The translations under genes were made by a program, and so were the position numbers. The notes beneath the pieces were generated by a model. That model was not told the origin of the DNA. It saw only the letters and a list, made by a program, of their open reading frames with translations, and searched no databases. A stretch of DNA of 64,000 nt, taken from sequence record NC_048821.1; one strand, 5' to 3'. This document shows, piece after piece, positions 15,142 through 40,962 of this stretch (position 1 is its first letter; the number at the start of each line of letters is the position of its first letter).

Positions 15142-17724
15142 ATGACAGCCAATAACTACAGCAGCCCCTTAGCGCGTTACGCCATTAAAGAGATGTACTC
15201 TAACCCTGGGGTGGCTCGTCAGTTTCAATTGCAGCTGACGCAGGTCTCCCCGGACGTTGGGTATATCAACGTCTTCCAATTCATGGGGCGTTATATTAAA
15301 ACACCGATCGAACGAGAATACTTTTTGATGTTTAACATGGCGGGCTTTGACGGCTCGACATGGAACTTCAAAGACTTACTCACCAGAGTAGACCCGGTGA
15401 ACAAATGGATTAACGTAGCTAAGATCTGTAAAGATCGCGGGATGATTATCGACATCTATGGAGATGACGGTCGTCTATACCCTAGGGATAAATGTTGGGT
15501 GATGTCTACTTATGACGGACAACACATCCTTGCTATCCAAAAACTAAGGGCTTTCAAATACGGTTGGGAACAAGCACGTTACTTACACTGCTATACAGTC
15601 CAGACCGATTTGTACAACCCAGTAACTAATCCTGATAATAAAGACTGGCCTCGCTTTACTTCTAACAATGGCAACAGTGTTGAAGAAAAAGATCGAATGA
15701 AGATCATTTACAGCGAGTACAAAAACCTTCCAGGATTGACCTCTGTTTATTTGAACGGGTATTTGTGGAATGGCTTCCCTAGTGATAGTCAGCTACTAGG
15801 TTCAGAGACCATCGAGATCACCAACGACCCGAGTGTTTGGAAAACTGAGACCTACGCCATTGATTCCCTACAGAACTTTTATTCTATCCGGGATGAAACT
15901 CGTAAGCTTATCATCCACCCTAAGAAAGAAGAAGGGGACTTCCTTTACCGTTACGTTTCAGACGTTTCGTTCTACTTAGTGGAAGGAAAGGGACGTGGCA
16001 TTTACTTGCATCGAAACCGAGCTAGTAACTTCCGTCAGTTAACACACCGAGACTTTGCTGTGGATTCTACCTTAGTGGATGACATGAGTAACTTGGAAGA
16101 CATGTTAAAGGACGAAACACGCTACTTGCGATTGGTGTATCGTAAAAACGATTATGCTCAAGAAATGCAGCACGAGTCTAGCGGAGTTCGTTATTTGTAC
16201 CGCATGAATGACCAAAACATCGTCGGTGCGTTAGTAGGAATTAACTCCACGGTGGAAGAGTGGAAAGCAGCCAACCTAGAGAACGCTGAAACTAACCTTT
16301 ACTTAGACCGCCCTTACGGTGAGTTAACTCACGAGCAAGCGGTGGAAGCGATTGGGTATAACCGAGCAACTCAGGTGTTGTGTGGCACACCCGTTTCTTA
16401 TGACCCTACTAGTGGAATGGAACTGGATGTACCTCCAGCGTGTCGAGAACACTTGACGTTATTTGAATATGACGCAGACGGCTTGTTCTTAAGAATGCGG
16501 GACTTCGCCAAGATACGACACGTGTTACCTTCACCGGACGCTCACCTGGTTGAATTCTATCCTGGGAAACCTGGCTTACGAATCCACATGGATATCGGTC
16601 GGGACACGATGGTGGTGGATAAAAACACAACCCCGCGTTTTTATTACCAGAAAGTCACTACCGAAGGTAATTTGGTTGGGGAACGTTTCTACGCGGTGGA
16701 AGGGGAACACTACACCTTTGACCGTGAAACTGGTACGGTCAACTGGGGATTACCTAGTTCCATGTTTATTGGCATGATTTTGTACAATGACCAAACGTTG
16801 TACAAAGAGTTTACTCTAGATCATATCGATAACTCATTGTCTTTCAGTGTTACCGAGGAATGGGTGCAAGGCGGGATGCTTACTGATGTTGCCCCGGCTA
16901 ACATCATGGTGATTATGAATCGTCGCTCGTTAATTGAAAATGTCGATTACGTGGTTCGTTTCCCTCACATCTATATTGTGAATCACCAGTACCTGAAAGC
17001 TGACGGTAATGACTTCGTACTTTATTGTAGCGAGTGGAGTCCTATTAGTGATACAGAGCCTGTAGAGCAAACTGAGCTTGGTTACGTTACAGGTGGGGTG
17101 ATTGGTCACAATACTCGCTACAACATCCGAGAGGACCGTGTGACGCGCACTACCATAGGTGGTAAAGTTTGGGATCCACTGAAAGTACCGGTTGCGGAGT
17201 TACATCCCCCTAGTGAGTTATTAAACCCGTACAATGGTCTTCCTTATGGTGTGAAACACTGGTACTTACCAATTCGTGATTGGGTTCCTTATGACCTGAC
17301 AGCAGGATGGAAAGAAGCTCGGGACCAAGACAAACGTATGAGTGATTACTTGACGTTGTTTGCCCGTAAACCAGAACCAGAAGTAATTCCAAGTTTGATG
17401 GACAAGTATCGAGTATTCAGTCCCTTTATGAATGCGGTTGTTAACCAGATACTTTTAGGTTTAATCGAACTGGATGACCTACCTCCGGGGGAATCTTACT
17501 CGGAAGACTATGTATTGCGTAAAACAGCGGAGTTCCAATGGTTGTTAGAACACGACCCCGTTACTCGCAACTACGATAGACGGTACTTTGCCGTATTCCC
17601 TTATGTTCAACAAACGATGGTTTCGGTTACTCCTAAGGAACTCATCTTCATCCGACGTATTAACGAGGTGTTCTTACAAAGCCGCGTTAATATAAATGGA
17701 CACTTTGAGGTTAAACATGTTTGA
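15142..17724 (+). CDS. Virion structural/baseplate-type protein (phiKZ gp27-position)
   Basis: 860 aa; synteny between the sheath and terminase genes. Confidence 0.6.
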   Translation: MTANNYSSPLARYAIKEMYSNPGVARQFQLQLTQVSPDVGYINVFQFMGRYIKTPIEREYFLMFNMAGFDGSTWNFKDLLTRVDPVNKWINVAKICKDRGMIIDIYGDDGRLYPRDKCWVMSTYDGQHILAIQKLRAFKYGWEQARYLHCYTVQTDLYNPVTNPDNKDWPRFTSNNGNSVEEKDRMKIIYSEYKNLPGLTSVYLNGYLWNGFPSDSQLLGSETIEITNDPSVWKTETYAIDSLQNFYSIRDETRKLIIHPKKEEGDFLYRYVSDVSFYLVEGKGRGIYLHRNRASNFRQLTHRDFAVDSTLVDDMSNLEDMLKDETRYLRLVYRKNDYAQEMQHESSGVRYLYRMNDQNIVGALVGINSTVEEWKAANLENAETNLYLDRPYGELTHEQAVEAIGYNRATQVLCGTPVSYDPTSGMELDVPPACREHLTLFEYDADGLFLRMRDFAKIRHVLPSPDAHLVEFYPGKPGLRIHMDIGRDTMVVDKNTTPRFYYQKVTTEGNLVGERFYAVEGEHYTFDRETGTVNWGLPSSMFIGMILYNDQTLYKEFTLDHIDNSLSFSVTEEWVQGGMLTDVAPANIMVIMNRRSLIENVDYVVRFPHIYIVNHQYLKADGNDFVLYCSEWSPISDTEPVEQTELGYVTGGVIGHNTRYNIREDRVTRTTIGGKVWDPLKVPVAELHPPSELLNPYNGLPYGVKHWYLPIRDWVPYDLTAGWKEARDQDKRMSDYLTLFARKPEPEVIPSLMDKYRVFSPFMNAVVNQILLGLIELDDLPPGESYSEDYVLRKTAEFQWLLEHDPVTRNYDRRYFAVFPYVQQTMVSVTPKELIFIRRINEVFLQSRVNINGHFEVKHV

Positions 17725-20700
17725 GAAAGATTTAAAAAGTCCCTCTCAGTCATCCGTCATTCCGGGAGCTGGTCCACAGCTCCCTAATGAAAATGACCGT
17801 GGGCGTATGCACTATATCTGGGAGATTTATGATCCAGATACAGTGAAACCGGGTGAAGCGCATCGTTATGTAGTTCCCCGAGAAAAAGAAATCGTAATTG
17901 ATCCTATCGCAGAAAAGAACTACGTGGTCACCCGCGTTAACTGGGAATCGGATTTAAAATCTACACTGGAACCTATCTTTGATAATGGTGAAGGCGATGG
18001 TGGTGCGGATGGCATCTTTGGCCTCCCTTCTGGTTTCCAAGGTGAGGCTGTCGTTGCAATTGACTACTCAGTCCGTCCTAACCGTGCTGTGATCGATGGT
18101 CAGGTTATGGCTCCGGGCGCGGCGTACGCGTTGTTGTACGAAGGCAACACCGTAGGAGATGACGGCAAAGTTATCTCTGTTGTATACTCTAACAACAACC
18201 AGTTAGTATCGAACCGCGTCCCAGTTACACTGGCAGCTTACCATGAGCTCAGCAACAAAGAGATCATGATTACTCAACCGTTCTCTGTGAACCGTAATCC
18301 TGATGAGTTGCCGGATGGGGCACGCTGTACTTTGGTTTGGTACGATATCAACGGTAACGTGATTCCTAAAGCCCGTACGTTGTCAGTCCAACACACTGCA
18401 ATGATGCGTGACCACCAAGTTGGTAAACGTTACATCACCCGTGTCGAGCTCGTGGCTCCTTGGTTCCTGAACACCAGTGATCCTAAAACGCTGAACGTTC
18501 CAGTCAACACTATGTTGCAGAACTTAGCGTTCCGTGCAGTAGTGCACTACAGTGATGGTTCTAAGTCAGACGAGCTTAGTATTGACGGTCAAAAGATTCA
18601 GCTACTTGGGTTAAACGAACACAAACCATCTACACCTAGTCAGCGCGGTACGTTGACCTTGGTTTATAACTTAGATTCGGATGAGTACATCTACGAAGCA
18701 CAACCTGGCAACCCTAACCAGTTCCGTGATTCTTACTGGATGTTGGCGGTACCGTTTGACGGCGCTTACTCTCCTAAACTCTACTCTTATCCGACTTGGG
18801 TAAACGGCCAATACATCCTGAAGCACTTCCTAACGGATTTAGACCGTAACTTCATGATCGACGCAACTGATCACGTACGTATTAATGAACTGTCCCCAGC
18901 TTTCCGTCCTACCACTTACGGTGTGGAACAAACGCTGGAACTGAACTGTCGTTTAAGTGACGTAGTTCCTACGTTCAAACCGATGATCATGCGTCAGTCT
19001 ACAACATTCGTGTTGAAGACACCGGGTACTGAACCAGGCAGTAAGTTTGACGTTCGTTATTCTTACGATCAGGGTTCTTACTCGGACCCCACGTTTAAGG
19101 CAGTTAACCAAGCAGACGGTCGTCAAGAAATCATCTTTGGTGGTGAATACGATGACATGGAAGATTGGTTAGAGCAGACGTACAATGCCGTTGAACCAGG
19201 GTTTAACCCGCAGCGTGAGAAAGGTCCTATTCGTCCTACTCACTTCGAAGTATTGGCGAGTTCGGGTAAAACATACGAATACGAAATCAGCCGTTATGCT
19301 GAAAAGATGTATTTGGATGTTCAAGAACCTCAAGGTCGGACTATCTACGTTCGCTGGATTCATGAATCCATTCAGGGTGATCGCTTGATTCTGGCTACCA
19401 CTGGTATCTCTATTGATGTTACCGAAGGTCCAGATACAGAAACGCCAGTTCCAACTACTATCGAGTTTGACAGTTCGGTACCTAACAGTATCGGTGAAAT
19501 GCAAATCATCGAGTTCTCTGGACGTGTTTACGATCAGAAAGGTGCGTTGGTAACAGACGGTCTAACTAAGATGTTGGTTAAAGGTGGTGTGATCTATGAT
19601 TCGACACCTCGTAAGGTCGACATTGGTTTAGACGGGACATTCCGTTTCTTTACATGGTCTGAACGTGTTAGTGGTTCTACTGAAACCTTTGAATTTGATT
19701 TTGAAGTTGCAGGTGAGGAACCAGAATACTTCCTAAGCAAAGACATTCGTATCACGACCAACCCTGAACAACAAATTGGTGAGTTCTTCCCTTACACACC
19801 AACTAAGGCGAGCATTAACAAAGCGGGTCGAGCGTACGGTCAATTACTGGACGAAGAAGGTACTCCATTGCGAGACACTGAATTCTTCTCTTTTGTTGAC
19901 AACGACTTGGACTCTATTCGCCGTGAGACTACGGATGAACAAGGTAAGTTCCTACTCACCCGTATCCACAAAGAAGGTCAAGATCGTACCACGTTCCACA
20001 TCGCAACTATGGGTGGTCGTAAGGAACATCTTTTACGCTGGGTGGAAACGGAACCATATGGTGACCGCATCATGCTTGATGTGGAAGACATGGATTTCGT
20101 TGGCGAAGAACCTCTATCGGTTACAGGTCGTGTTTACGACCAATATGGTGACCTAGTAGTAGGCGTGCCGGTTAAAATCGGTTACGGTCCTTTGTGGGCT
20201 ACTTACACTGATACTTTATCGGTTGAGAATGGTAAATACGAGCTAACGGGTTCTCCTAAAGAGCCGGGCATGAGTTACCAAGTGGTGGTCTGGACTGAGA
20301 ACGATTTCTCCTTTGGTACAGTGGAATGGTCTGAAGCACCTAAGGTAGCCTTCGACATTGTCATGAGTCCGGATAATGCACCGGAAGCGCCGGCAGGCAC
20401 CAGTGTTCGCATTTCGGGTCAGTTGGTGGATGAAGAAGGTAACAACTTCACAAGCGATAGCCGTACACCGGTTTACATGAAGGAACTGAAAGACGCGGAC
20501 GAGACGATCATCTACGCTGGTTTCGATGGACGCTTTGAAGCCGAAGTAGGTCCTTACGGGGACTGGGAAGAAACCACGTTTGTGTTCCGTCTAGAAAACG
20601 GTAACCAAGGTAGTCACATGATTCGTTGGATGGGGGAACCTCCACGTCTTGCAAAGATTACATTTGACGATGGATTACCAGTAACGAGTAAAGTTGGTGA

Positions 20701-22480
20701 GTCAGTAACCCTAAGTGGCAAGACTTTCGACCAACATGATGAGGCTTACTTACCGGGCGTTCCATTTGAATTTGAAGTGGAGTTCGCAGGCACTATCGAG
20801 AAAGCCCAATCAGACGGCAATGGCAACTGGACTTATGAAGCGGTAGGGGTTAAGTCGGGTAGTACGACTTACGGATTCTCTGCTAACAACCGTGCAGTGG
20901 GTTCTTACACCATCAACTTCACTGGTGACATAACAGTTACACCACTACCAAACGACGATCGTTTATTCCGTGTTCCTAACGGCGTTAACCGTACTATTGG
21001 CTGGTATGTGTTGGACGAGTCTGGTGCAGCTAAGGCGAACGTAACGCTGTCTTTGCGTCAAAAGGCAACGATCTATTCACCTGAACGCGATCTCGGCACC
21101 ATTACTACGGATGAACACGGCATTGCTACATTCGAAGCCCCTTATTTAGAAGGTGAAGAAAGTGGTGCTTACATCGCATCTCTGGGTGTGAAAGAAGCCA
21201 CCGTCGTTGTTGGATGGAGTGATGAGTCGGGTATTAGTGTTACCATGACGCAAATGTCTGTACCTACGATTACCTACGGAAGAGAGTTGTTATTCACTGG
21301 TGTAATGCTGGATGAAAACGGTGACCCGTTAATTCCAGATGACGTTAACACGGGCATTAGACTGGGTGGTTACGATCGCAACACGTTCGAACACATCCCT
21401 GTTTCTATCCGCGGACTAGACCCTATTACGGGCGAGTTCACAGCGTACATGACCAGCGAGACTTTCGTTACTAAAGACATCGTGCTTTACAACGAAGTGA
21501 ACAACGAACTTCATACGGTCGAATGGGCTGCCCCAGATATTACCGGTGCGTACATTGAGTGGGATCTTTCAAGTTCACCTAGTGTGTTAGTTGCTGGTGA
21601 AACTTTCCCGTTCCGAGGTAAGATCTACCAAGCTAATGGTGAGCTATATACACCGCGTGCTCCAGAGACACTTTCTGTGACGACGGATGAAGGTCCTCAT
21701 GCGGATGCAAACATCTACCAAGATGGTACAGTGATGTTAGAGATCACTAATGCATCAAGAGGTGTGCTGACTTACTCATTGTACCGTGACCCTGCGGCAA
21801 CCATCGATGACTCTCTTGAGATCGAATGGGTAGAACAAGCGTCTGTGGGATTCACCCCATACTCATACAGTGAAGTCCCTCAAGGTGAATCTGGTGAAGT
21901 TTGGCTGATCTATAAGCAAGATGGTGACCAACCAATCCAATACCGTGATGTATTAGTGGGAGTTGGTAATCCGGGTCCGGATAACGTTCCTAGAACACTT
22001 ACTACCGATGAATTCGGTATTGTGAAAGTCACGTTACCTTACAACGACACCGAATCAAGTAAGTCTATTGCCGGCATCTTAGGGGAAACGGTTCCACTAG
22101 CCATCCATAACCTCACATGGGTTGAGGATACTGTTAAAGTGGGTACTTCTTTCCGTGACCTATCAGTCCCTAGTAAAGTAGAGATTGGTGCGGAAGTGGA
22201 AGTCGTCGGTGAGGTGTTGGATAAATCCGGCGCTCTTACTGATTACAACGGAGTAGGTATTTACGATAAGACCACTCATACTTTCCACGAAAATGCCGTG
22301 AACTCGGATGGTAGCTTTAGTGTCAAACTAGGACCTTTGAACGAAGGTGACCATCATTTAGTAGTTTACACGGGTGCTGAAATTTCAGAGCACGTTGTGC
22401 GTTGGGATTCAAGCTTTGTTAATTTTGACTCTGTTGGGATTGATGAAAGCTCTAACCGTGTGGCGTTAATCACTAAATAG
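17717..22480 (+). CDS. phiKZ gp26-position structural protein with a C-terminal extension of about 1000 aa of Ig-like repeats
   Basis: Start at ATG 17717 (RBS GAGG); non-repetitive N-terminal ~570 aa, then repeats with G(R/K)V.DQ.G, DG.F and TDE.G motifs. Confidence 0.75.
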   Translation: MFEKDLKSPSQSSVIPGAGPQLPNENDRGRMHYIWEIYDPDTVKPGEAHRYVVPREKEIVIDPIAEKNYVVTRVNWESDLKSTLEPIFDNGEGDGGADGIFGLPSGFQGEAVVAIDYSVRPNRAVIDGQVMAPGAAYALLYEGNTVGDDGKVISVVYSNNNQLVSNRVPVTLAAYHELSNKEIMITQPFSVNRNPDELPDGARCTLVWYDINGNVIPKARTLSVQHTAMMRDHQVGKRYITRVELVAPWFLNTSDPKTLNVPVNTMLQNLAFRAVVHYSDGSKSDELSIDGQKIQLLGLNEHKPSTPSQRGTLTLVYNLDSDEYIYEAQPGNPNQFRDSYWMLAVPFDGAYSPKLYSYPTWVNGQYILKHFLTDLDRNFMIDATDHVRINELSPAFRPTTYGVEQTLELNCRLSDVVPTFKPMIMRQSTTFVLKTPGTEPGSKFDVRYSYDQGSYSDPTFKAVNQADGRQEIIFGGEYDDMEDWLEQTYNAVEPGFNPQREKGPIRPTHFEVLASSGKTYEYEISRYAEKMYLDVQEPQGRTIYVRWIHESIQGDRLILATTGISIDVTEGPDTETPVPTTIEFDSSVPNSIGEMQIIEFSGRVYDQKGALVTDGLTKMLVKGGVIYDSTPRKVDIGLDGTFRFFTWSERVSGSTETFEFDFEVAGEEPEYFLSKDIRITTNPEQQIGEFFPYTPTKASINKAGRAYGQLLDEEGTPLRDTEFFSFVDNDLDSIRRETTDEQGKFLLTRIHKEGQDRTTFHIATMGGRKEHLLRWVETEPYGDRIMLDVEDMDFVGEEPLSVTGRVYDQYGDLVVGVPVKIGYGPLWATYTDTLSVENGKYELTGSPKEPGMSYQVVVWTENDFSFGTVEWSEAPKVAFDIVMSPDNAPEAPAGTSVRISGQLVDEEGNNFTSDSRTPVYMKELKDADETIIYAGFDGRFEAEVGPYGDWEETTFVFRLENGNQGSHMIRWMGEPPRLAKITFDDGLPVTSKVGESVTLSGKTFDQHDEAYLPGVPFEFEVEFAGTIEKAQSDGNGNWTYEAVGVKSGSTTYGFSANNRAVGSYTINFTGDITVTPLPNDDRLFRVPNGVNRTIGWYVLDESGAAKANVTLSLRQKATIYSPERDLGTITTDEHGIATFEAPYLEGEESGAYIASLGVKEATVVVGWSDESGISVTMTQMSVPTITYGRELLFTGVMLDENGDPLIPDDVNTGIRLGGYDRNTFEHIPVSIRGLDPITGEFTAYMTSETFVTKDIVLYNEVNNELHTVEWAAPDITGAYIEWDLSSSPSVLVAGETFPFRGKIYQANGELYTPRAPETLSVTTDEGPHADANIYQDGTVMLEITNASRGVLTYSLYRDPAATIDDSLEIEWVEQASVGFTPYSYSEVPQGESGEVWLIYKQDGDQPIQYRDVLVGVGNPGPDNVPRTLTTDEFGIVKVTLPYNDTESSKSIAGILGETVPLAIHNLTWVEDTVKVGTSFRDLSVPSKVEIGAEVEVVGEVLDKSGALTDYNGVGIYDKTTHTFHENAVNSDGSFSVKLGPLNEGDHHLVVYTGAEISEHVVRWDSSFVNFDSVGIDESSNRVALITK

Positions 22481-22490
22481 GAAATAATAA

Positions 22491-25400
22491 ATGGCAGGTA
22501 TTATCAGAGGGAACTTACTCGATGCTGAAGGCAACGAAGTAAACCCGGGTAAACCCGTCACATTAAAGGCCGTCCGATCGGACGGCCTACCTGATGTGAC
22601 TATCACGACCAATGATTCTGGTCATTGGTCCTTAGAAGTGAACGCTGAAGTCGACTCTCAGGTCGACTTCACTTTTATTTACAATGGGGTGGATGTAGGA
22701 GCACACGCAGTGCGTTTCATTGAAACAGCTGAAGTAGTAACCTTGCCGTATTCTAATTTCCGCGTTAAAGTGGGTAACACTGGTGTTATTGCATTTGCGG
22801 TAAAAGACGATCAAGGTAATGGGGTTCCGTATGCGGATGTAACTATCCACCGTGACGACGAAAACTCCGAACCAGTGACAACTCTAAGGACTGACCAATT
22901 TGGTATCGTCACTTATACGGTTCCGCCTCACAACGTTTATGAACGTGTGGGGTTCTGGGCTAAGTCTGGAGGCACTACTGCGTTTTGGGGTGTTCAGTAC
23001 GAAGATGGGGAAGAAGAGTTTGCTATTTCAATGGCTAACTTCCATTACACTGAGCAATTAGGTTTGGGTAATGAACTATTAGTCATGGGCGGTGGTAATG
23101 ACCCTTGGGGATCGTTAATTTACAACCCACCTAAAGTTCTTTTTAATAAAGACACTCTGACTGAGGTCACTTACACCGAGATCTCTGATGACTTAACCAA
23201 CAACGTATTCCTAACAGTCGCGGGGTTATCTGAAGGTAATCACAACTTTGTGTTTGCAATGGAATCCGAATACCGTGAGTTTGTTGTTGAATGTGGGGAC
23301 TTCCAAGAAGAAACCATTAACACAGTAAAGCGCCATTACCCGACAGCGACCAAGTTTTTTGTAAACATGTGGTCAACGCTGGAAGCGACAGTTCAAGTGG
23401 ATGGTGTGGACTATAAGCCTCACGGCGTAGTTTACATGACCGTTGAGAGAAACGAAGATTCGATACAATCTTTGGTTTGGCCTAATGGTAAATTCGGTTA
23501 TCCTGTTTCTGGTAAAAACGGTGACGTCTACCAATACACCATTAAGAACGGTGACGCGGAAGTTCTGGCAGAGCATCCGGCTTACGTCGTTGATGGTAGT
23601 GTAAAACTTTGTGAATACTCAGTGGATACCCTCCCTACCTTGGGCAAGGGCACAGTTGCGTTCGCTATTGTTGATGATGAAGAGAAGCCAGTGACTGGCG
23701 GGTTTACTCTCGTTAACCCTGGAACCAATGCATCTGAACAAGTTGAGGTTACTGACGAATTTGGTATCGTTGAAGTAGAAGTAAGTCGTGCTTCAGGTGA
23801 GAATGAAACATTCGTGTTGTGTAGTATCGGTGGGTTTGCTAGTGTGAATCACAAAGTTACCTTCACTGGCGCTCCTGTGGCTTCTGAGTTCCGTAACTTG
23901 GATATCCCAACACAAGGTGATACTGAGACTCCTATCACTGTAACAGGGCAAGTCTACGACCAAGGTGGAAGTGCATTTAAACCACCTCGATTGGGTGTGT
24001 TTGATAAACAGAGCTTAACACATCAAGCATTCGACGCTTCTCTTATCGGAAGTGACGGTACGTTCTCTTTTGAGTATGGTCCTTTGTCACAAGGTCAACA
24101 CGACCTCGTCTTAGGTTCTTCAGGTATCATCTCTGAGAAACGCACACATTGGTCCATTGGTTTCCCTGATGGTCTTCGCACCGAACGCATGAACTACTCC
24201 ACATACCCTAACGCTTATGTTGGTGACGACGCTATTGTGGCAGTCCGTGCAAGTATCGTAGAAGACGGGTTACTGGTTCCTGTTGTCGGTGTTCCTGCGA
24301 CAGCTTACATCAATGGCCCTGGTGTGACCGACGTTGAACTGGAAACTAAGTTAACTGACGCTAACGGTATTGCGGAATTCAACATCCCGGCTTCAGTCAA
24401 TGAAACTACCTTAAACGGCAACTACGCCATCACGATGGTGGTCGGCCCTAACGTAGTTAGAACTGACATTACTTGGTTGGAAGGTTCTGATGTAATATCA
24501 GGGTTTAGTGACTTGGATTACAACCCGACCATTAATACTGGTGGTGAACTGGTTTACACCTACCGTCCTTTAAACCAAGACGGCCAACCAATGGCGGACC
24601 GTGGCGTTTACGTGACTCCGATAGATCATTTCCAGATTGGTGCTTACAATGCTACCATTTATGAAAATGCTGACGGGTCCTACACTGCGGAATTCCCAAC
24701 AATGGAAGACGGGACTTACGACGTTGTATTCCATTCAGGAAACGCTCAGGAACGCATGTCATTGACTTGGGGTGCGTATCCGGTAATCAACCCTACCTCA
24801 GTACTACTTGACTTCCTATCACCTACCTCTGGTGTAGTAGGAAGTGACGCTATTGTGTCGGGTAAGATTGTGGATGAGAACGGTAGTGTGATCCGACCTA
24901 CCGCTGGAATGCGTTTAACTGTTCGTGATGAAACTGGCTCAGAAATCCACGTTAGGGTTAAACCTGATGGGTCTTGGTCATTCGCTGCGAACTCCACCAT
25001 CGCTAAGACTAAGTCTTACAACATCCTGCATAGCGGAACAAACCTCTATGTTCATCAGATCGATTTCCATGAAACTCCTACGGTTACTTTCACCGACTAC
25101 ACTGGTGACAAAGTCGCTAAGACTCACGAGGCGATGTTAGCTACTGTGGTTAAGGATGTGGATGGTAACGGCATTCCAGGGATGTTGGTGGAGTACAAGA
25201 ACGATGACACTCACTACGGTTCAGTAATCACTGATGAGTTTGGTATCGCGGAATTCACTATTCCGTTTAACCTAGAGACCATCGTTTCCCCTACAGTAGA
25301 ACAGGATTATGTTGTTGCTCATATTAGCGACACTATCTCTGATGACGTTACTGTTCGTTGGGCAGGTGATGATGAAAACTCCGCAATTGAAATCATTGAC

Positions 25401-28400
25401 TTGGTGGTGGACTCGGATGTGTACGAAGGTACCACCGCTACCATCACTGGTAGGTTGATCGGTTCATTGGGTACGAACGATAACGCTTGGATGTGGTTAA
25501 CAGTCTTTAACAAGACAACGCTGGAAAGTAAGATGTTCAATAACAACATCATGCTGGACGGCACGTTTGAGATCGAAGTGGGTCCTTACCCTATGGGTCT
25601 TAACCAATTGGTTATTGCAACCAACAGTTACACCACTCCTATTTCGTTAGAAGTTACAGAAGCGCCTATCGTGCTTAAAGAACTACGCACACTTCCTTAT
25701 TCAACCAGTAAGGTTAAGTCTGCTGGAAGCGCTACGCTTGCCTATGCTGCTATTAACTCTCTAGATAAGGCAATGGTGGGTGAAACTGTAGAACTACGCT
25801 TAGCGAGCGATACAGGCATCCTGTTGGACACTGTAGTGACCGACAAATACGGTATTGCGGAATTCACTGTTCCAGACAACGAAAGTACACCGAACACTGG
25901 TGACGTTACGTACGTTGCTGTGAGTGGTGAGTTCTCAGCTCAGTCGACCGCATCTTGGGGTGAAACTGGTGTTGTAATTGAATCCCTAGATGGGTTCGAG
26001 GCAACTGGGTTGGTTAGTAGTGGGGCTAAGGGTGTAATCAAACTGAGTCCTTTGAGTAAGCTTGTTTACGACTCAGGTTCTTTTGCACAAGACCCTAATG
26101 GTAAACTAACTCCTTGGGAGACCATGACGCATGTCCGTGGTGCCACAATTAACGTCTTTGATAAAGTTACGTTGACTGCGATCCCACACAGTCGTGTGAA
26201 TGTTGACGTTGACGTAGGCGGTGAGAAGTTTGACATTTACACAGTCGACGCTCTTCCAGATGGTTTCTACGATCTAGTTGTTTACTCAGACAACGCAATC
26301 GAAACAGCAACCATGACTTGGGACACTGAAACTGAACTAGCGAAGCCAGATCGTTTCGTATTAACAAACAGCATTACTACAGCGTTTGTACAAAACGACA
26401 CAAACCAATGGTTGGATGGTGATGTTCAGTCTACGTCGGGTCCTGCTTTTGAACTGACGGGTTACGTAGAACCAGTAATGGTTGGTTCACAAGAACACCC
26501 AGTTTGGATCACACCTAAAGGACGATTCGTGACTAAACTGAGCGAACCTCGTTCTGAAGGTGTTCATTCGTACGACTTTAAGGTTGACGGGACAGTGGTG
26601 GATACGAAGACTATCACGTTCTACGATAGCCTTAACGTAGAGCTACTTCCTTACACCACCCCTAACCCAGTTAAGGGCAAAGTTGCGACTATCGCAGCTG
26701 TAGTTAAAGACGGTAGTGGTGAGGTGGTTCCGGGTGCTTGTGTGACACTTACCCCGGGTGCACGTATTACTTACGAACACTCAGTTAACCTCAATAGTGA
26801 CTTTAATGGTTCTGTTGAAATGACGTGGGAGTACGACGAAGCTTATCCAGAGTTTACGTTAATCACTGGTTGTAACGGTAAGCGTAATGGGGAACGACAA
26901 CTATTACGTTGGGTTGAATCTCCTGAACTCACTGGGGATAGTTTTGAAACACTGGTTGTGCCTGAGAAAGTGGTTGGGGATGACAAAGCAACGATTACTG
27001 GTAAGATCTTAGATCAAGAAGGTAATCCTTACGCTAATGGTGAATTGTTGGTTTACAACAAAATCACTATGACGTCAACAGACCTTACTACAGCCATCCA
27101 GCCAGATGGGACGTTCTCTACGGAATTGGGACCTTACCCATTCAACGCTTATGAGTTAATCTTCGCGACTCGTGGTAACGTAGATCGTCGTACGGCAGTA
27201 TGGGGTGGTAGTGGTATCTTAGCAAGTATCGAAATTGATCCTGATAGCGGCACACGTGGTCTATTAGGTGATACGGTTGAGATCTTTGGTAGTTCCACGG
27301 ATACCATCGGGACACCCTTCACACCAGATGAAGGCATTTACACTCTGGATGTTGTGAATGACAAAAACGATGATGTTCTTCCAACGGTAATCGATGCACA
27401 AGGTAACTGGTCCTTTAATGCGACTCATGACGTAAGTGAAACGGTCACGTATACCTTTAAAGATGGCGAAACAGTCCTAGCGACTCATGCTGTTGAGTTC
27501 TTTGAAGGCGCAGGCACTTTACGTAACTTCGACGCCCCTAGCACGGTTAAGGTGGGTCTGAATGAAGACTTCACATTAACGGGTAAAGTGTACAACACCA
27601 TGAACAAACTTTACCGACCAATCGTTGAAGAATTGTTCACACTGGTGCTGGATGAGACTACTGAGTTCCAAGGCACGATTCATACTGACGGTACATTCAG
27701 CGTGAAGCCGACGAACGATAAAGTGGAAACTCAAAGCTTCACCTTTAAGGTCGGAGAAGACACTTACGACACGGTAGACATCAAGTGGTGTCAGACTGTA
27801 AGCTTAGCGTTTAACGCAGACTCTCAACCTAAAGCTGTTGTCGGTGATGATGCTTATGTGTCAATCCGAGTGGTGGATGAGAACGGTGAAAGCGTTACCG
27901 GACGCACAGTGGAGTTCTATGAAGGTGAAGTCACAGGTGAACCTCTAGATACTGAGGACGTCTACAGTGAGACCTACATTGGTTACTGGCCTAAAGAAGC
28001 CACTGAAGTGGGTGACGTAGTAATCACTGCTAAGTTGGGTGGTATCCAAGATACCTTGACGCTGTCTTGGGTAGGTAACGATCCTAAGATCGCGGCTGGA
28101 TTTGGTCGTAAGACCTCAAGAACTGGTTACGTGGTTGACACTAAACCGGCTTCTGGTACGACAGCAACACTACGAGGTACAGTTGTAGACCAAGACGGTA
28201 CGCCGTTAGCAGGCCCGCAATTCCTTAAAGTGTTTGATCAAGGGTCGTTTGACTTAACGGATTACTCTGCACAAGTTCAGGCTGATGGTACGTTCGATAT
28301 CGAACTCCCAGTCAAACCAGATGGTACTTACAACTACAGTCTTGTTACTGAAGGCAATGTGGGTTCTATCAGAGGTATTTCTTGGGACGCGGAAAACGAA

Positions 28401-31400
28401 GACCTGAAAGCGGTTAAGTTGGATGCGAGTGTTCCTACTCAGGTTAACGTTGCTAGTACACATACTCTCCAAGGTACTATCTTGGATAGCGCCGGTGACA
28501 CCATTGCTCCAGCTAAGAGTATTACGGTTTACGTAAACAGTAGTGAAGGTAACACCTACGAGTTCACAGTTACACCGGACGGTACATGGTCGTTTGCTTA
28601 CACCTTTAGCAATGAAGGGGATGTGTTGTTCGACTTCCACACTTACCAAGGTAAGTACTTGGGGTCTGTCACCATCACGGTTGAAGAAGCAGCGCCGGTA
28701 TTCACTTCTATTGAGTGGGTTGGTGAACAACCTACAGAAGGGATGGTCGGTGAGTCTGTGAAACTGACTGCGGTTACTTTAGATCAATACGGAAATCCGA
28801 TCGATGGCGTTTCGGTACGACCATTCATTAATGGTGAGCCACAAAACGCTTTCCGTTCTCCTCCGGGTGGTTCTTGGAGTCTGGATTACACTTCAACTGA
28901 AGCAGGCCCAGTACTTTACGAATTTGGTTGGGAACCAGACGTTGCTCGTATTGGGCATACTGTTGAGTGGAAGCTTCCAGTGGATTCAATCGAGGTCATG
29001 CGTTATTCTGACTCTAACGCAGTACCGGGACAAACCGCGTTTGTACCTTTCGCTGCACTAGATAGTTCAGGTAAGGGCATTGCGGGTGTTCCTATTGCTC
29101 TTCACTTGGATTCAGCATCAGGAACGTTATTGACCACGGTAACTACCAACGAGTTTGGTATTGCTGAGTTCAGCGTTCCTCAGAAAGGAAGTAACGCTAA
29201 CCGTTTGATCTACGCTAAATACGGCGATATTGTAAAAGAGCGTCGTCAATGGTGGGCTAACGATCCACTTACACCTCCAACTGGATTCGCTAACTTAACG
29301 GTTACTAACCCAGTACCTGAAGGTGAGCGCGCACTAGTTAGTGTTCAAGCAGTAGCAAGTGACGGTAGTCCTCGTCCGTTGTCCACGGTAGGCATCTTTG
29401 ATCCGGAAATATTGGATCAGGTATTATTTAACCGTGTAACCACTGGTGAGTCTAAATCTCACTTACTGGACTTTGCGCATAGCGGAACAGGAACTAAGAC
29501 TTACATCTTAACTACTGACGCTGGTCGTCAAGAGTTCTCGGTGACATGGGAAAGTAAACCGGCAGTCACGCCAAACGACTTAGTGTTCGACGCGGATTCT
29601 CCGGAATCATTAGTAGTGGGTGAATGGAACACGTTAAGCGGTAAATTAGCGGTAGACGGGGTTCCAGTAACTGAACTGGATCACTACGTTAAGGCGACAA
29701 TGACTGTGGGTGGTAAGGAGAGCTACCTAGACTTGGATGTTAGCAAAGGGACGTTCCGTGTACTGGTTAAACCAACAGCGGCAGGAACAGAAAACTACGA
29801 CTTCAAACTTAATGGTACGAGCGTTGTGGTAAAGTCCTTCCGTCACAGTGACAACGTGACGTTAAACGACGTGAGTGTGTTATCGGTCACCACACCTCAG
29901 ATAGGTGACCCTGTGGTACTGAGTACTGTAGTGAAAGATAGCGAAGGGAACCCTATCCCTAAACTTCCGGTGACGTTTAAACTAGCCGGCGGGAACACAC
30001 TCGCAACATTAAACACGGACGTCAAAGGAATGGTAACACATTCAGTGCCTTACCAATCCGGGACAATGTCTTCTGACTTTGAAATTAAAGTGGGAAGCGT
30101 CGTAGAAACAGTAACGGCAACTTGGAAGCCAACTAATGAACTTATCGACGTGGCGTTTGAAGGGCTAACTACCCCGGCAACGGTTTACGATGGTGAATTA
30201 GCGAAAGTAACAGGTAAGTTAATCAACCAACAAAACAATGGGACATCAACAACTAAGTTTGAGATTTACCATCGTGGGTTATTAACGCACACCAGTCATG
30301 CCACCGATGTACAGCCGGATGGTACGTTCGACTTTAATATTGGTCCGTTTGCAGTAGGGGTGAATGAGTTCTACTTCATCATCAACGGTAAACGCATTGA
30401 ACGTAGCATCGAGTACATTGAACGCACTGACCCAGAACTGAATCGTGTTGAGTTAGATGAGGGTAATCCTACGTCAGGGTTCTCTGGCGAAAACTTAACC
30501 ATCAGTGGTAAAGGTTACGATCAATACGGTGATCCAATTGCAAACGCTCAGGTTCAATGGGCGATCTCTGGTGATGCACAACCTGCATTAACCACAGGTC
30601 CAGATGGTTCATTCAGCACAACAGTTACGCACAACACCAACGCTAGCATCACCTACCGATTCGGTGGCAATGATGGTATACCGGTGGCTAACTTGAGCAT
30701 TGCGTGGACCGTAGCGACATCAAACACGATGGCGTTTGTTGGTACATCGCAATGTAAGCAAACTCAAAACAACGAGGCTAACATTGAGTTGTACGTGAAA
30801 GACCAAGACGGTGTTGGAGTTCAAGATGCTCAGATCGTAATTAGAGATCAGGGTTCAGAAACTCCTATTGCGACACTGACAACTAACGTACGTGGTTTAG
30901 CGTCTTACGCTATCCCTTATGAAGCAGGTAACGATAACCGTACTATCGAAGCGACTCTGGATCAACTGACCGAGACGTTAGACATTACGTGGTATCCTGC
31001 GGTGACTAAGTATGCGACCGGGTTTACTCGTCTCTACATGGATAACCGCCCTGCTTCAGGAAAATCAACGACAGTACGTGGTCAGTTAGTTGATCAAGAT
31101 GGCAATCCAATCACAACGGCTTCAACGTTGGGTATCTTTAACACGATTACCTTGGAGAACTATGATTACATCGATCGACTACAACCAGACGGTACGTTTG
31201 AGTTTGAGTATGGTCCTGAGGCTGACAGTAACTACCCTATCTCGCTCTTCACCGATGCTGGTCATTTCGATGAAACGATCATTTGGGATTTGAATAACGC
31301 TGACATGAAACGTGTGGTGTTTGACAACAACATTCCTAGAATGACGAAGAGTAACGGTAGAGTTAGTCTGCACGGTACGTTTGTGGACAGTGATGGTAAC

Positions 31401-33074
31401 CCATTCACTCCGTTGTCTAATACCGCGTGTACAGCCACTGGGGATAATGGTGACGCCTTTACGGGTACCATTAAAACGGATGGTACGTTCGAAGTTGAAG
31501 TATGGTTCCCTGAGTACCGTACTCACAAAGTCGACATATCAGCACCAGATAAGACTTACCTAGGAACTTACTCTCTGGTAGTGACCGCAGACAACATCAT
31601 TGATGAAATGCCTTACTCAGCTAACGTTGCAACCACGGGTCAACCGGCAACAATGGCAGTGAAAGTCGTGAACCAAAGTGATGTTGCGGTAGAGGACACT
31701 GTAGTTACTGCTCACTTGGGTGACCCAAGTAATCCGGCAGTGGTGACAGCGAACACCGACGCCAGAGGTATTGCGACCATGAATGTTCCGGCTCCAGCGG
31801 AAACAGGTAAAACGACGGTCTACTTTAAGAACGGTACTTCGGTACTTGACGCAGAGGTGGATTGGAAACCTGTGGAAGAATTGGTCGGTAAGACATTCGA
31901 AGATGTTGTGACGTCATCTCCAGCTGAATACGGCCAACCAGCTACAATCAGTGGTAAGCTGTTAGATCAGAACGGGGACGTGTTACCGGGTCGTAACCTT
32001 GGTGTGTATCACTTGAACGGAGGTACGTTGTTGAATACCACTGTAGTGAAGAACGATGGAACAGGGTTTACTCTGGAAGTTGGTCCTTTAACTACAGGAA
32101 CACATCAGTTAGTGTTGTTCACGGGTAATGCTGAACGTTATGAAGAGATTACATGGAACGTGGAAATTCCTCCTATTGGAAAACTAGAAACGGTCTCGTT
32201 CTCTTCAACGAAGGCCCCAAGTGGTCAACCTGCCAAAGTTCACTTCTACGTCCTTGCACCTAACTACGGTCGCGTCAAAGACGTTCCGGTAACTGCACGT
32301 TGGGGTAATGCTCAGGGTGAAGTTATTGCAACAGAAATGACGAACTCTGAAGGCTTGGTAAGTTACACCTTACCGGGAACGAATGAGTCTGGTGATCGAC
32401 TAGGCACACATACGGTTTACGTTGAAGTTGGTGGTAAGTCCATCACGGATACCGTGGAGTGGGTGGACGATGAATTGATCGGTGAATCCATCATTGAAAT
32501 CGACAACATGCAGAACATCGAATACGGGGAGAAATTCCTAGTTCGCATGACGGTCAGAGATCAAAACAACGAACCTATCCGTAATCCGGGATACAGTCTG
32601 TTCCAACCTAAATCTCGTCAAGAGGTTATCAATCTGGTTCGAATCGACTACCCGGGTGATGATGTGGTGTTCCAAGCAACCGCACAATCAAGTTCAGTAA
32701 CGGAGTTGTATGTGGGTACTGATAATGACTATCGTGTTATCCCTGTTAACTGGGATTACGCTAACGACATCATTAAACCAGTGACCGCAGCGATCGATGT
32801 TGATGTTCCTGAGTATCATCCTGTGGGTGTTGACTCAATAGTGAAAGGTAAAGTGCTCGACACCAATGGTTTAGAGTTCCGACCAACCACTATACTGAAG
32901 CTGAAAGCACGTCGTGTTAGCGATAATTCAGAAACTGAGTTGACGGTCATGCCAGATGGCGAATGGGCGTTTGTTGTGAACGAACCTACTGAGTCTGAAG
33001 TAGTGTACAAGTTAATGTACGGCAACGTAGAATTAATGGAATACACGGCTAAGTTCGGTACTCCTGCAAGCTAA
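22491..33074 (+). CDS. Giant Ig-like (Big/invasin-type) repeat protein, 3527 aa; probable virion fibre/adhesin
   Basis: About 12 super-repeats of roughly 290 aa containing TD(E/K)(F/Y)GI.EF, G.(L/V).DQ.G and DG(T/S)(F/W) motifs; rich in Thr/Val/Gly/Asp/Glu. Confidence 0.8.
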   Translation: MAGIIRGNLLDAEGNEVNPGKPVTLKAVRSDGLPDVTITTNDSGHWSLEVNAEVDSQVDFTFIYNGVDVGAHAVRFIETAEVVTLPYSNFRVKVGNTGVIAFAVKDDQGNGVPYADVTIHRDDENSEPVTTLRTDQFGIVTYTVPPHNVYERVGFWAKSGGTTAFWGVQYEDGEEEFAISMANFHYTEQLGLGNELLVMGGGNDPWGSLIYNPPKVLFNKDTLTEVTYTEISDDLTNNVFLTVAGLSEGNHNFVFAMESEYREFVVECGDFQEETINTVKRHYPTATKFFVNMWSTLEATVQVDGVDYKPHGVVYMTVERNEDSIQSLVWPNGKFGYPVSGKNGDVYQYTIKNGDAEVLAEHPAYVVDGSVKLCEYSVDTLPTLGKGTVAFAIVDDEEKPVTGGFTLVNPGTNASEQVEVTDEFGIVEVEVSRASGENETFVLCSIGGFASVNHKVTFTGAPVASEFRNLDIPTQGDTETPITVTGQVYDQGGSAFKPPRLGVFDKQSLTHQAFDASLIGSDGTFSFEYGPLSQGQHDLVLGSSGIISEKRTHWSIGFPDGLRTERMNYSTYPNAYVGDDAIVAVRASIVEDGLLVPVVGVPATAYINGPGVTDVELETKLTDANGIAEFNIPASVNETTLNGNYAITMVVGPNVVRTDITWLEGSDVISGFSDLDYNPTINTGGELVYTYRPLNQDGQPMADRGVYVTPIDHFQIGAYNATIYENADGSYTAEFPTMEDGTYDVVFHSGNAQERMSLTWGAYPVINPTSVLLDFLSPTSGVVGSDAIVSGKIVDENGSVIRPTAGMRLTVRDETGSEIHVRVKPDGSWSFAANSTIAKTKSYNILHSGTNLYVHQIDFHETPTVTFTDYTGDKVAKTHEAMLATVVKDVDGNGIPGMLVEYKNDDTHYGSVITDEFGIAEFTIPFNLETIVSPTVEQDYVVAHISDTISDDVTVRWAGDDENSAIEIIDLVVDSDVYEGTTATITGRLIGSLGTNDNAWMWLTVFNKTTLESKMFNNNIMLDGTFEIEVGPYPMGLNQLVIATNSYTTPISLEVTEAPIVLKELRTLPYSTSKVKSAGSATLAYAAINSLDKAMVGETVELRLASDTGILLDTVVTDKYGIAEFTVPDNESTPNTGDVTYVAVSGEFSAQSTASWGETGVVIESLDGFEATGLVSSGAKGVIKLSPLSKLVYDSGSFAQDPNGKLTPWETMTHVRGATINVFDKVTLTAIPHSRVNVDVDVGGEKFDIYTVDALPDGFYDLVVYSDNAIETATMTWDTETELAKPDRFVLTNSITTAFVQNDTNQWLDGDVQSTSGPAFELTGYVEPVMVGSQEHPVWITPKGRFVTKLSEPRSEGVHSYDFKVDGTVVDTKTITFYDSLNVELLPYTTPNPVKGKVATIAAVVKDGSGEVVPGACVTLTPGARITYEHSVNLNSDFNGSVEMTWEYDEAYPEFTLITGCNGKRNGERQLLRWVESPELTGDSFETLVVPEKVVGDDKATITGKILDQEGNPYANGELLVYNKITMTSTDLTTAIQPDGTFSTELGPYPFNAYELIFATRGNVDRRTAVWGGSGILASIEIDPDSGTRGLLGDTVEIFGSSTDTIGTPFTPDEGIYTLDVVNDKNDDVLPTVIDAQGNWSFNATHDVSETVTYTFKDGETVLATHAVEFFEGAGTLRNFDAPSTVKVGLNEDFTLTGKVYNTMNKLYRPIVEELFTLVLDETTEFQGTIHTDGTFSVKPTNDKVETQSFTFKVGEDTYDTVDIKWCQTVSLAFNADSQPKAVVGDDAYVSIRVVDENGESVTGRTVEFYEGEVTGEPLDTEDVYSETYIGYWPKEATEVGDVVITAKLGGIQDTLTLSWVGNDPKIAAGFGRKTSRTGYVVDTKPASGTTATLRGTVVDQDGTPLAGPQFLKVFDQGSFDLTDYSAQVQADGTFDIELPVKPDGTYNYSLVTEGNVGSIRGISWDAENEDLKAVKLDASVPTQVNVASTHTLQGTILDSAGDTIAPAKSITVYVNSSEGNTYEFTVTPDGTWSFAYTFSNEGDVLFDFHTYQGKYLGSVTITVEEAAPVFTSIEWVGEQPTEGMVGESVKLTAVTLDQYGNPIDGVSVRPFINGEPQNAFRSPPGGSWSLDYTSTEAGPVLYEFGWEPDVARIGHTVEWKLPVDSIEVMRYSDSNAVPGQTAFVPFAALDSSGKGIAGVPIALHLDSASGTLLTTVTTNEFGIAEFSVPQKGSNANRLIYAKYGDIVKERRQWWANDPLTPPTGFANLTVTNPVPEGERALVSVQAVASDGSPRPLSTVGIFDPEILDQVLFNRVTTGESKSHLLDFAHSGTGTKTYILTTDAGRQEFSVTWESKPAVTPNDLVFDADSPESLVVGEWNTLSGKLAVDGVPVTELDHYVKATMTVGGKESYLDLDVSKGTFRVLVKPTAAGTENYDFKLNGTSVVVKSFRHSDNVTLNDVSVLSVTTPQIGDPVVLSTVVKDSEGNPIPKLPVTFKLAGGNTLATLNTDVKGMVTHSVPYQSGTMSSDFEIKVGSVVETVTATWKPTNELIDVAFEGLTTPATVYDGELAKVTGKLINQQNNGTSTTKFEIYHRGLLTHTSHATDVQPDGTFDFNIGPFAVGVNEFYFIINGKRIERSIEYIERTDPELNRVELDEGNPTSGFSGENLTISGKGYDQYGDPIANAQVQWAISGDAQPALTTGPDGSFSTTVTHNTNASITYRFGGNDGIPVANLSIAWTVATSNTMAFVGTSQCKQTQNNEANIELYVKDQDGVGVQDAQIVIRDQGSETPIATLTTNVRGLASYAIPYEAGNDNRTIEATLDQLTETLDITWYPAVTKYATGFTRLYMDNRPASGKSTTVRGQLVDQDGNPITTASTLGIFNTITLENYDYIDRLQPDGTFEFEYGPEADSNYPISLFTDAGHFDETIIWDLNNADMKRVVFDNNIPRMTKSNGRVSLHGTFVDSDGNPFTPLSNTACTATGDNGDAFTGTIKTDGTFEVEVWFPEYRTHKVDISAPDKTYLGTYSLVVTADNIIDEMPYSANVATTGQPATMAVKVVNQSDVAVEDTVVTAHLGDPSNPAVVTANTDARGIATMNVPAPAETGKTTVYFKNGTSVLDAEVDWKPVEELVGKTFEDVVTSSPAEYGQPATISGKLLDQNGDVLPGRNLGVYHLNGGTLLNTTVVKNDGTGFTLEVGPLTTGTHQLVLFTGNAERYEEITWNVEIPPIGKLETVSFSSTKAPSGQPAKVHFYVLAPNYGRVKDVPVTARWGNAQGEVIATEMTNSEGLVSYTLPGTNESGDRLGTHTVYVEVGGKSITDTVEWVDDELIGESIIEIDNMQNIEYGEKFLVRMTVRDQNNEPIRNPGYSLFQPKSRQEVINLVRIDYPGDDVVFQATAQSSSVTELYVGTDNDYRVIPVNWDYANDIIKPVTAAIDVDVPEYHPVGVDSIVKGKVLDTNGLEFRPTTILKLKARRVSDNSETELTVMPDGEWAFVVNEPTESEVVYKLMYGNVELMEYTAKFGTPAS

Positions 33075-33083
33075 TGTAAAGTA

Positions 33084-33116
33084 ATAACTCAGGTGGGTTA
33101 GACCCACCTGAGTTAT
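33084..33116 (+). terminator. Intrinsic terminator
   Basis: 15-bp perfect stem ATAACTCAGGTGGGT-tag-ACCCACCTGAGTTAT followed by CTTTATTTT. Confidence 0.85.
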
Positions 33117-33221
33117 CTTTATTTTCCACTTATTTAAACCCCACTGAGAATTTATTGAACGAAACGCGTAACTGGGTTCTCCCTTGGCCCGGTGTGTATA
33201 ACAAGCAAAAGGAAGATACTA

Positions 33222-40874: not shown

Positions 40875-40886
40875 TCATAACTAACT

Positions 40887-40920
40887 ATAACCGAGTAGGA
40901 CTTTCGTCCTACTCGGTTAT
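40887..40920 (+). terminator. Intrinsic terminator
   Basis: 15-bp perfect stem ATAACCGAGTAGGAC-tttc-GTCCTACTCGGTTAT followed by TTATGCA. Confidence 0.85.
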
Positions 40921-40962
40921 TTATGCATCGTATAGACCCTAGCCATTAAGCAAGGAGTTATC

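Follow-up and report, generated by a model that had tools for sequence, protein, structure and literature searches.

A gp26-type anchor and a giant fibre of Photobacterium phage PDCC-1 meet within an Ig-like repeat: a conserved gene boundary and a candidate strand-docking joint

The stretch analysed here, a window of 64,000 nucleotides from sequence record NC_048821.1, matches Photobacterium phage PDCC-1 at 100% identity. This jumbo phage of 237.5 kb is phiKZ-like and is assigned to the genus Aphroditevirus in the Gorgonvirinae. Downstream of the tail sheath and tube genes, which are divergently oriented, its plus strand carries a 292-aa protein, the four proteins here called P0, P1, P2 and P3, and then the large terminase, in that order. 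This study concerns the boundary between P1, a homologue of the phiKZ baseplate protein gp26, and P2, a giant fibre made of immunoglobulin (Ig)-like repeats. P1 ends in a 24-residue tail with the length and register of the segment that opens an internal repeat, P2 begins at the position where that segment would stop, and this arrangement recurs in related phages. It is plausible, judging from these features, that the tail hooks the fibre onto its anchor by strand complementation.

Anchor and fibre genes at the PDCC-1 locus

The features discussed below are as follows; pLDDT, the predicted local distance difference test score, refers to AlphaFold2 (AF2) models, and HMM to a hidden Markov model of the repeat.

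15142..17724, plus strand: P0, 860 aa, homologue of the phiKZ outer-baseplate scaffold gp27
17717..22480, plus strand: P1, the anchor (gp186); the open reading frame (ORF) opens at 17696, while the annotation and the orthologues begin at 17717 (M-F-E-K...)
17870..19399, plus strand: gp26-like module of P1, ORF residues 59-568, from matches to PHIKZ026 and phrog_3430
19424..22405, plus strand: Ig-like repeat arm of P1, about 10 domains, from the repeat HMM; Ig/filamin/SbsC-like fold
22112-22405, plus strand: last intact P1 domain, closing Trp at 22403-22405, AF2 pLDDT about 97
22406..22477, plus strand: C-terminal tail of P1, 24 residues, apparent counterpart of the linker and strands A and A'
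22430-22477, plus strand: last 16 codons of the tail, under purifying selection
22478..22490, plus strand: P1-P2 junction, with TAG, an overlapping AGGAA ribosome-binding site and two TAA codons in the P2 frame
22491..33074, plus strand: P2, giant Ig-repeat fibre (gp187), 3527 aa
22491..22736, plus strand: P2 head domain, residues 1-82, beginning at strand B, without A and A'
33084..33116, plus strand: hairpin resembling an intrinsic terminator, between P2 and P3
33222..40874, plus strand: P3, second giant fibre (gp188), 2550 aa
33222-33467, plus strand: P3 head, paralogous to the P2 head and with the same start position

An earlier note on this DNA had called the first protein gp26-like, and the label is apt: the sequence match to PHIKZ026 (9xqd_a, E 1.3e-47) pairs P1 residues 59-568 with 35-544 of its 552 residues, the whole length of gp26, and P1 also matches phrog_3430 (E 1e-140). 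P1 is thus a complete gp26 to which about 1000 residues, the Ig repeats and the tail, have been added. The neighbourhood is that of the phiKZ gp26 family as well (PhiKZ_VTX, DUF7193, phiKZ_gp29PR), with homologues of gp27 and gp28 beside the tail sheath and tube genes. Among PDB sequences P0 matched PHIKZ027 over its full length (E 3e-43), and it also matched phrog_3184. With its start at 17717, P1 shares 8 nt with the end of P0, a sign that these two genes may be coupled too, and P0 is probably the partner of P1 as well as its neighbour. In the outer-baseplate 'star lobes' of phiKZ, gp27 is the scaffold and gp26 the cross-linker; each lobe holds five copies of gp26, whose C-termini insert into partner proteins (PMC13250141). 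By analogy P1 would be an outer-baseplate protein, the virion location being known for phiKZ gp26 only.

Ig-like domains, each of approximately 100 residues, make up P2, P3 and the part of P1 that begins at about residue 577. Searched as a whole protein against Pfam, P2 scored 107 bits for Big_1 (cut-off 34.9) and 65 bits for CarboxypepD_reg (cut-off 32.3), and the fold matches of the repeats were to filamin, SbsC and invasin-type Ig domains.

One repeat register across two polypeptides

In a profile built from 25 internal copies, the domain proper is preceded by 27 upstream positions. The profile recovered 32 internal copies at E < 1e-4; most have the upstream segment in full, and none lacks its end. 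Only the N-termini of P2 and P3 begin after it. In each of the six lineages examined, residue 1 of the P2 head falls on the profile position that immediately follows this segment. The segment that the heads lack has a counterpart at the end of P1. Among the 17 internal copies whose preceding domain closes in Trp, strand B follows that Trp at a distance of 24 residues in 11, and at 23, 25 and 26 residues in two copies each; the P1 tail comprises exactly 24 residues after its Trp, with a hydrophobic-x-hydrophobic-Asp motif at the modal position, +13. When the tail was scored in register against internal segments its average BLOSUM62 score was -13.6, compared with -8.1 +/- 5.7 for genuine segments and -21.3 +/- 4.5 for all 24-mers of the repeat region, and register 0 was the best of nine offsets.

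In the AF2 model of the last intact P1 domain (pLDDT about 97), strand A occupies Trp+10 to Trp+15 and strand A' Trp+19 to Trp+21. Measured against this neighbouring domain, the tail agrees with A and A' in length and strand pattern, and the proposal that the first strands of the domain lie on protein 1 holds to that extent. The tail itself was modelled as flexible, with no secondary structure and a pLDDT of 53-66, as expected of a peptide that folds only on its partner. The underlying observation, a repeat register that runs on across the gene boundary, is confirmed. The two internal repeats that the earlier note had cited in its support do lie where it placed them, at P2 residues 1577-1600 and 766-791. 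Its alignment over '24 of 24 positions' is indeed gapless; identity to the cited repeat amounts to just 5 of 24 residues.

Continuity of register over a gene boundary is also what one would expect if P1 and P2 were made as a single polypeptide, through frameshifting, readthrough or bypass, or if the stop were a sequencing error. We consider this very improbable. P1 ends in the residues quoted earlier, at TAG 22478-22480, and its frame, if continued, meets TGA after 15 further codons; the P2 frame, +1 relative to that of P1, contains TAA TAA (22485-22490) directly before its ATG at 22491. With stops in both frames, neither readthrough nor a simple frameshift would yield a fused product; only a bypass could. 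At least one stop stands just before the ATG in the P2 frame of every lineage, and the same junction layout is found in independent genomes and metagenome contigs; it is these stop codons, together with the many independent genomes, that exclude recoding or sequencing error. An AGGAA ribosome-binding site is moreover placed at the right distance from the P2 ATG. Readthrough, frameshift and a suppressor tRNA were each rejected as candidates, given the stops in both frames and the window's lack of tRNA genes, none having been found in it. The stop codons, protein ends and register as first quoted were all correct, and the claim that two in-frame TAA codons before the ATG preclude a fusion by frameshift or readthrough extends to stops in both frames in all lineages. 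P1 and P2 are thus separate polypeptides. They are probably translationally coupled, because the ribosome-binding site overlaps the P1 stop codon.

No terminator lies between P1 and P2, and strong hairpins occur 3' of P2 and of P3, the latter at 40887-40920. The fibre genes are poor in sigma-70-like promoter matches (12 in 21800-41200, compared with 26.8 +/- 6.5 in shuffled sequence). A further terminator-like hairpin, an 11-bp stem followed by a T-rich run, is located inside the head-coding region of P2 (22646-22671, plus strand). Its stem is perfectly kept in 5 of 5 Aphroditevirus genomes while the loop differs and nearby synonymous sites vary, and it is absent from metagenomic lineages L009 and L010 and from VP4B. 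It may act as an attenuator of the 10.6-kb gene, or repeated Val-Asp codons may have produced it incidentally.

Conservation of the tail and the head in relatives

Tail, spacer and head recur together in at least seven lineages. The conserved layout, a 24-residue tail, a 10-nt spacer (TAGGAA...ATG) and a head beginning M-A-G-I-I-[RK]-G, was present in five Aphroditevirus genomes and in metagenomic lineages L009, L013, L014 and L010. The split point is accordingly kept, with the same 10-nt spacer, wherever in this set it was checked, as the first proposal had asked of relatives. The gp26-like modules of L009 and L010 are 73-74% identical to that of PDCC-1.

This history bears on the possibility that the tail is an evolutionary scar, left when a repeat gene was cut by a stop and a new start or when a head cassette recombined into the array, in which case it would be a leftover linker with no role in docking. 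For the last 16 tail residues, comparison with phage 2 TSL-2019 gives no amino-acid change and eight synonymous codon changes (binomial P = 0.003), and comparison with phiKT1019 one amino-acid and five synonymous changes (P = 0.017), while in the 124 codons before them 30-32% of residues differ (30% for phage 2 TSL-2019). Synonymous changes without amino-acid changes point to a constraint on the peptide and not on the DNA, and the last 16 residues are thus under purifying selection, which disfavours a scar. So do the invariant length of the tail across lineages whose gp26-like modules are only about 73-74% identical to that of PDCC-1, and the persistence of its motif in two genera. The weak similarity of the tail to internal A segments would suit a scar, as would the partial A-A'-B units at other fibre C-termini (P1 and P2 of Tidunavirus, P2 of L013 and L014), which are typical of recombination within repeats. 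On balance we regard a functionless remnant as distinctly improbable.

The second genus is Tidunavirus (VP4B, pTD1 and phiKT1028), where the P1 orthologue has about 2480 aa and keeps the tail motif V-x-[IV]-D...S-N-[KR]-x-x-L-I, although the adjoining domain has diverged much further; the P2 head starts at the same position as in PDCC-1. In P1 of this genus, and in P2 of VP4B and pTD1, the approximately 60 C-terminal residues resemble two tandem A-A'-B mini-units without the remaining domain (L006, 11680-11871 and 16960-17160, with equivalents in L007). These could be extra donor units or remnants of recombination. Lineages L013 and L014 have a second junction of the split type, between P2 and P3 (20070-20220 in L013 and 22340-22500 in L014); here 24 residues follow the last Trp as a tail, and the spacer measures 16 nt. 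Because P3 of these lineages begins inside the A' region, its start repeats part of the end of the tail.

Two P1 orthologues without a tail, in L011 and L012, are not followed by a head-bearing fibre. In L011 (1958-8113) P1 is followed directly by the terminase, with no giant fibres; in L012 (6732-18181) it is followed by an unrelated 1826-aa protein that lacks the head and has faint BNR/sortilin-like matches. In both relatives the tail and the head-bearing fibres are thus missing together.

The head, for its part, behaves as a fibre attachment module, with the usual signature, as seen in these sequences, of a conserved N-terminus and a variable distal part. Four phages share it with 100% amino-acid identity, although their DNA match ends close to P2 residue 139 and their distal parts no longer align. 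It is common to two to five paralogous fibre genes per genome, and the same boundary, at strand B or later, is found in P3 of PDCC-1 and in four or five Tidunavirus fibres. The head stood at residue 1 in 11 of 17 matches among 1.84 billion representative proteins, and every one of its close homologues began there. A PDB sequence search with the P2 N-terminus gave no match, and the fold search with the head gave only generic matches to Ig and carbohydrate-binding-module-like folds (E > 0.01); no pilin family or fold was among the Pfam and fold matches. In Tidunavirus genomes (phiKT1028, L017 and L018; VP4B, L015) four to five fibre genes with the head stand in a row, encoding 759-1720 aa each and spaced by approximately 60-160 nt, whereas PDCC-1 has two, which are much longer.

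Proposed docking of the tail and its precedents

We propose that the C-terminal peptide of the anchor docks onto fibre heads that lack strand A, and put the probability of this at roughly 0.45, a little short of even. P1 would be an outer-baseplate protein of gp26 type, lengthened by an Ig arm of about 10 domains and ending in a flexible 24-residue peptide, whose length, register and alternation of hydrophobic residues are those of strands A and A' in internal repeats. The heads of P2 and P3 begin at strand B, with A and A' missing, and the tail would lie along their free edge in trans in place of these strands, by beta-strand complementation or augmentation. In this way the far end of the anchor arm would hold the giant fibres by a non-covalent link. 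If the 30 copies of gp26 in phiKZ are a guide, each virion could have several P1 tails, available to both P2 and P3. The probable origin of the arrangement is the splitting of a longer repeat gene, after which duplication spread the head to other fibres. Observed were the anatomy, its register and conservation, and the fact that tail and fibres occur together; the docking, its stoichiometry and the evolutionary origin are what we infer from them.

Several results weigh against this proposal. AF2 folded the first 104 residues of P2 confidently alone, as a six-strand sandwich with strand B at residues 2-8 (pLDDT 94.9), so the N-terminal Ig domain, which had been supposed incomplete, is not obviously so. 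CarboxypepD_reg begins exactly at the head start, in a single-domain match below the Pfam cut-off; Big_1, also matched below its curated cut-off, would put about 16-23 more positions upstream of the head. The lone AF2 fold and the CarboxypepD_reg start together indicate that the head may be complete without a donor, and what it lacks are edge strands, whereas pilins lack a core strand. Most paralogous head-bearing fibres follow terminators and have no donor tail upstream; since P3 and the extra Tidunavirus fibres lack an adjacent donor, one tail would have to serve several fibres. A tblastn search with the 24-residue tail found one site per genome only and no second donor copy. In Tidunavirus the tail motif is internal, 33-45 residues from the C-terminus and followed by a second A-A'-B-like unit; the P1-P2 spacer of approximately 130 nt contains a terminator-like hairpin, and coupling of the two genes is absent. 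The 1.84 billion representatives contained no unsplit relative, nor any close full-length copy of the head in an internal position. The tail alone had no significant match to an HMM of the internal copies (-0.4 bits), and its similarity to internal A segments is marginal (empirical p 0.046, or 0.087 relative to shuffled tails); what goes beyond chance is the register taken together with the conservation, not the sequence similarity. Finally, the joint absence of tail and fibres from two relatives could stem from a single deletion event.

A rival reading is that of an autonomous head that binds another baseplate component, with the tail serving some other contact, between P1 copies or between P1 and the baseplate, and the split coinciding by chance with a domain boundary. 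The head's confident fold in isolation (pLDDT 95), the CarboxypepD_reg match from its first residues and the heads of P3 and the Tidunavirus fibres, which have no adjacent tail, are all in its favour. So is phiKZ, where gp26 C-termini enter gp157, gp130/gp139 and other gp26 copies (PMC13250141) and where the fibres dock via paralogous N-termini at separate sites. Yet it leaves unexplained why the tail has the modal length of Trp+24 with the A/A' pattern, why the tail ends where the head starts in at least seven lineages and why tail and fibres are lost together. We judge it unlikely, though it deserves to be taken seriously. The first proposal, that one Ig domain is split over two genes, is on the whole partly supported: the A/A'-like tail, the register and the conservation favour it; the self-sufficient fold of the head, the paralogous heads without a tail and the Tidunavirus layout weaken it.

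A wider form of the docking proposal is more tentative still, and we would sooner doubt it than rely on it: that the Gorgonvirinae hang two to five giant Ig-repeat fibres by a natural split-Ig coupling, in which A/A' donor peptides on the anchor, and in some lineages on the fibres, complete the heads in trans. Fibres might then be exchanged, multiplied or joined in series as modules. No coupling of this kind would have been described from a virus before, and its polarity would be that of type V pili. In the chimallivirus virion no part is less well resolved than the outer baseplate and fibres, which both recent atlases leave largely unmodelled. If docking of the tail is real, a donor tail and a strand-less head would give a rule, readable from sequence, for which protein carries which fibre. 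It would also explain how fibres of 2500-4500 residues are attached and why head modules are conserved while distal parts are swapped, and it would be a natural instance, beyond bacterial pili, of one gene product completing the Ig domain of another. Should it prove wrong, the locus would remain a clear example of a repeat gene that underwent fission and left a conserved peptide behind.

Neither strand complementation nor a conserved N-terminal fibre adaptor is new in itself. In the searchable literature we found no description of a donor peptide and an acceptor head flanking a phage gene boundary, with variants recurring in one subfamily; searches on donor strands in phage tail fibres returned nothing relevant, and those on PDCC-1 and within the paper on phiKT1019 and phiKT1028 yielded nothing on these fibres.

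Among known systems, the chaperone-usher pili first offered as the analogy share with this locus an Ig-like domain completed by a strand of another polypeptide, but the polarity is wrong: their donor is an N-terminal extension and the strand they lack is the C-terminal core strand G, whereas here the donor is C-terminal and the missing strand N-terminal. No chaperone or usher was present among the genes examined, no dedicated search having been run. In SpyTag/SpyCatcher, an engineered split Ig-like domain, a terminal strand supplied as a separate peptide restores the fold. Strand-swapped fibronectin type III (FN3) and filamin domains are a further parallel, filamin-type domains and the N-terminally strand-swapped scaffold 4m6a being among the fold matches obtained here. 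These systems differ in being engineered or homodimeric, and SpyTag forms an isopeptide bond, while nothing here suggests a covalent link.

Within the phiKZ-like phages, the gp26 network offers a structural setting: the N-terminal 570 or so residues of P1 are a full gp26 beside a gp27 homologue, and the C-termini of phiKZ gp26 insert into partners. P1, however, also carries the Ig-repeat arm and the tail; phiKZ has no arm of this kind, and its fibres gp131-135 dock by helical N-terminal segments. The DUF7941 'fibre cloud' of Goslar consists of filaments at the chimallivirus peripheral baseplate for which head-to-tail assembly has been proposed, with a flexible or disordered segment predicted to dock on the N-terminal domain of the next protomer (bioRxiv 10.64898/2026.04.21.720040). 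It belongs to another family (Pfam gave no DUF7941 match in P1 or P2) and forms homotypic oligomers without Ig strand completion. Together with the phiKZ gp26 C-termini it nonetheless provides a precedent, documented or proposed, for docking by flexible termini in chimallivirus baseplates.

A close counterpart is offered by the type V pili of Bacteroidia (FimA/Mfa1), in which a C-terminal donor strand replaces an absent N-terminal strand by protease-mediated exchange (PMC13655056). The anatomy of the joint proposed here is compatible with this: the donor would be C-terminal, the acceptor's N-terminal strand is absent and a beta-sheet would be completed non-covalently. The differences are that at the PDCC-1 junction the N-terminal strand is genetically absent, stops preceding the ATG, and not removed by a protease; that the fold is a small Ig-like repeat without homology to pilins; and that two different proteins would be joined once, with no homopolymer. 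In its polarity, which matches that of type V pili, the arrangement is by this analogy closer to them than to the chaperone-usher pili.

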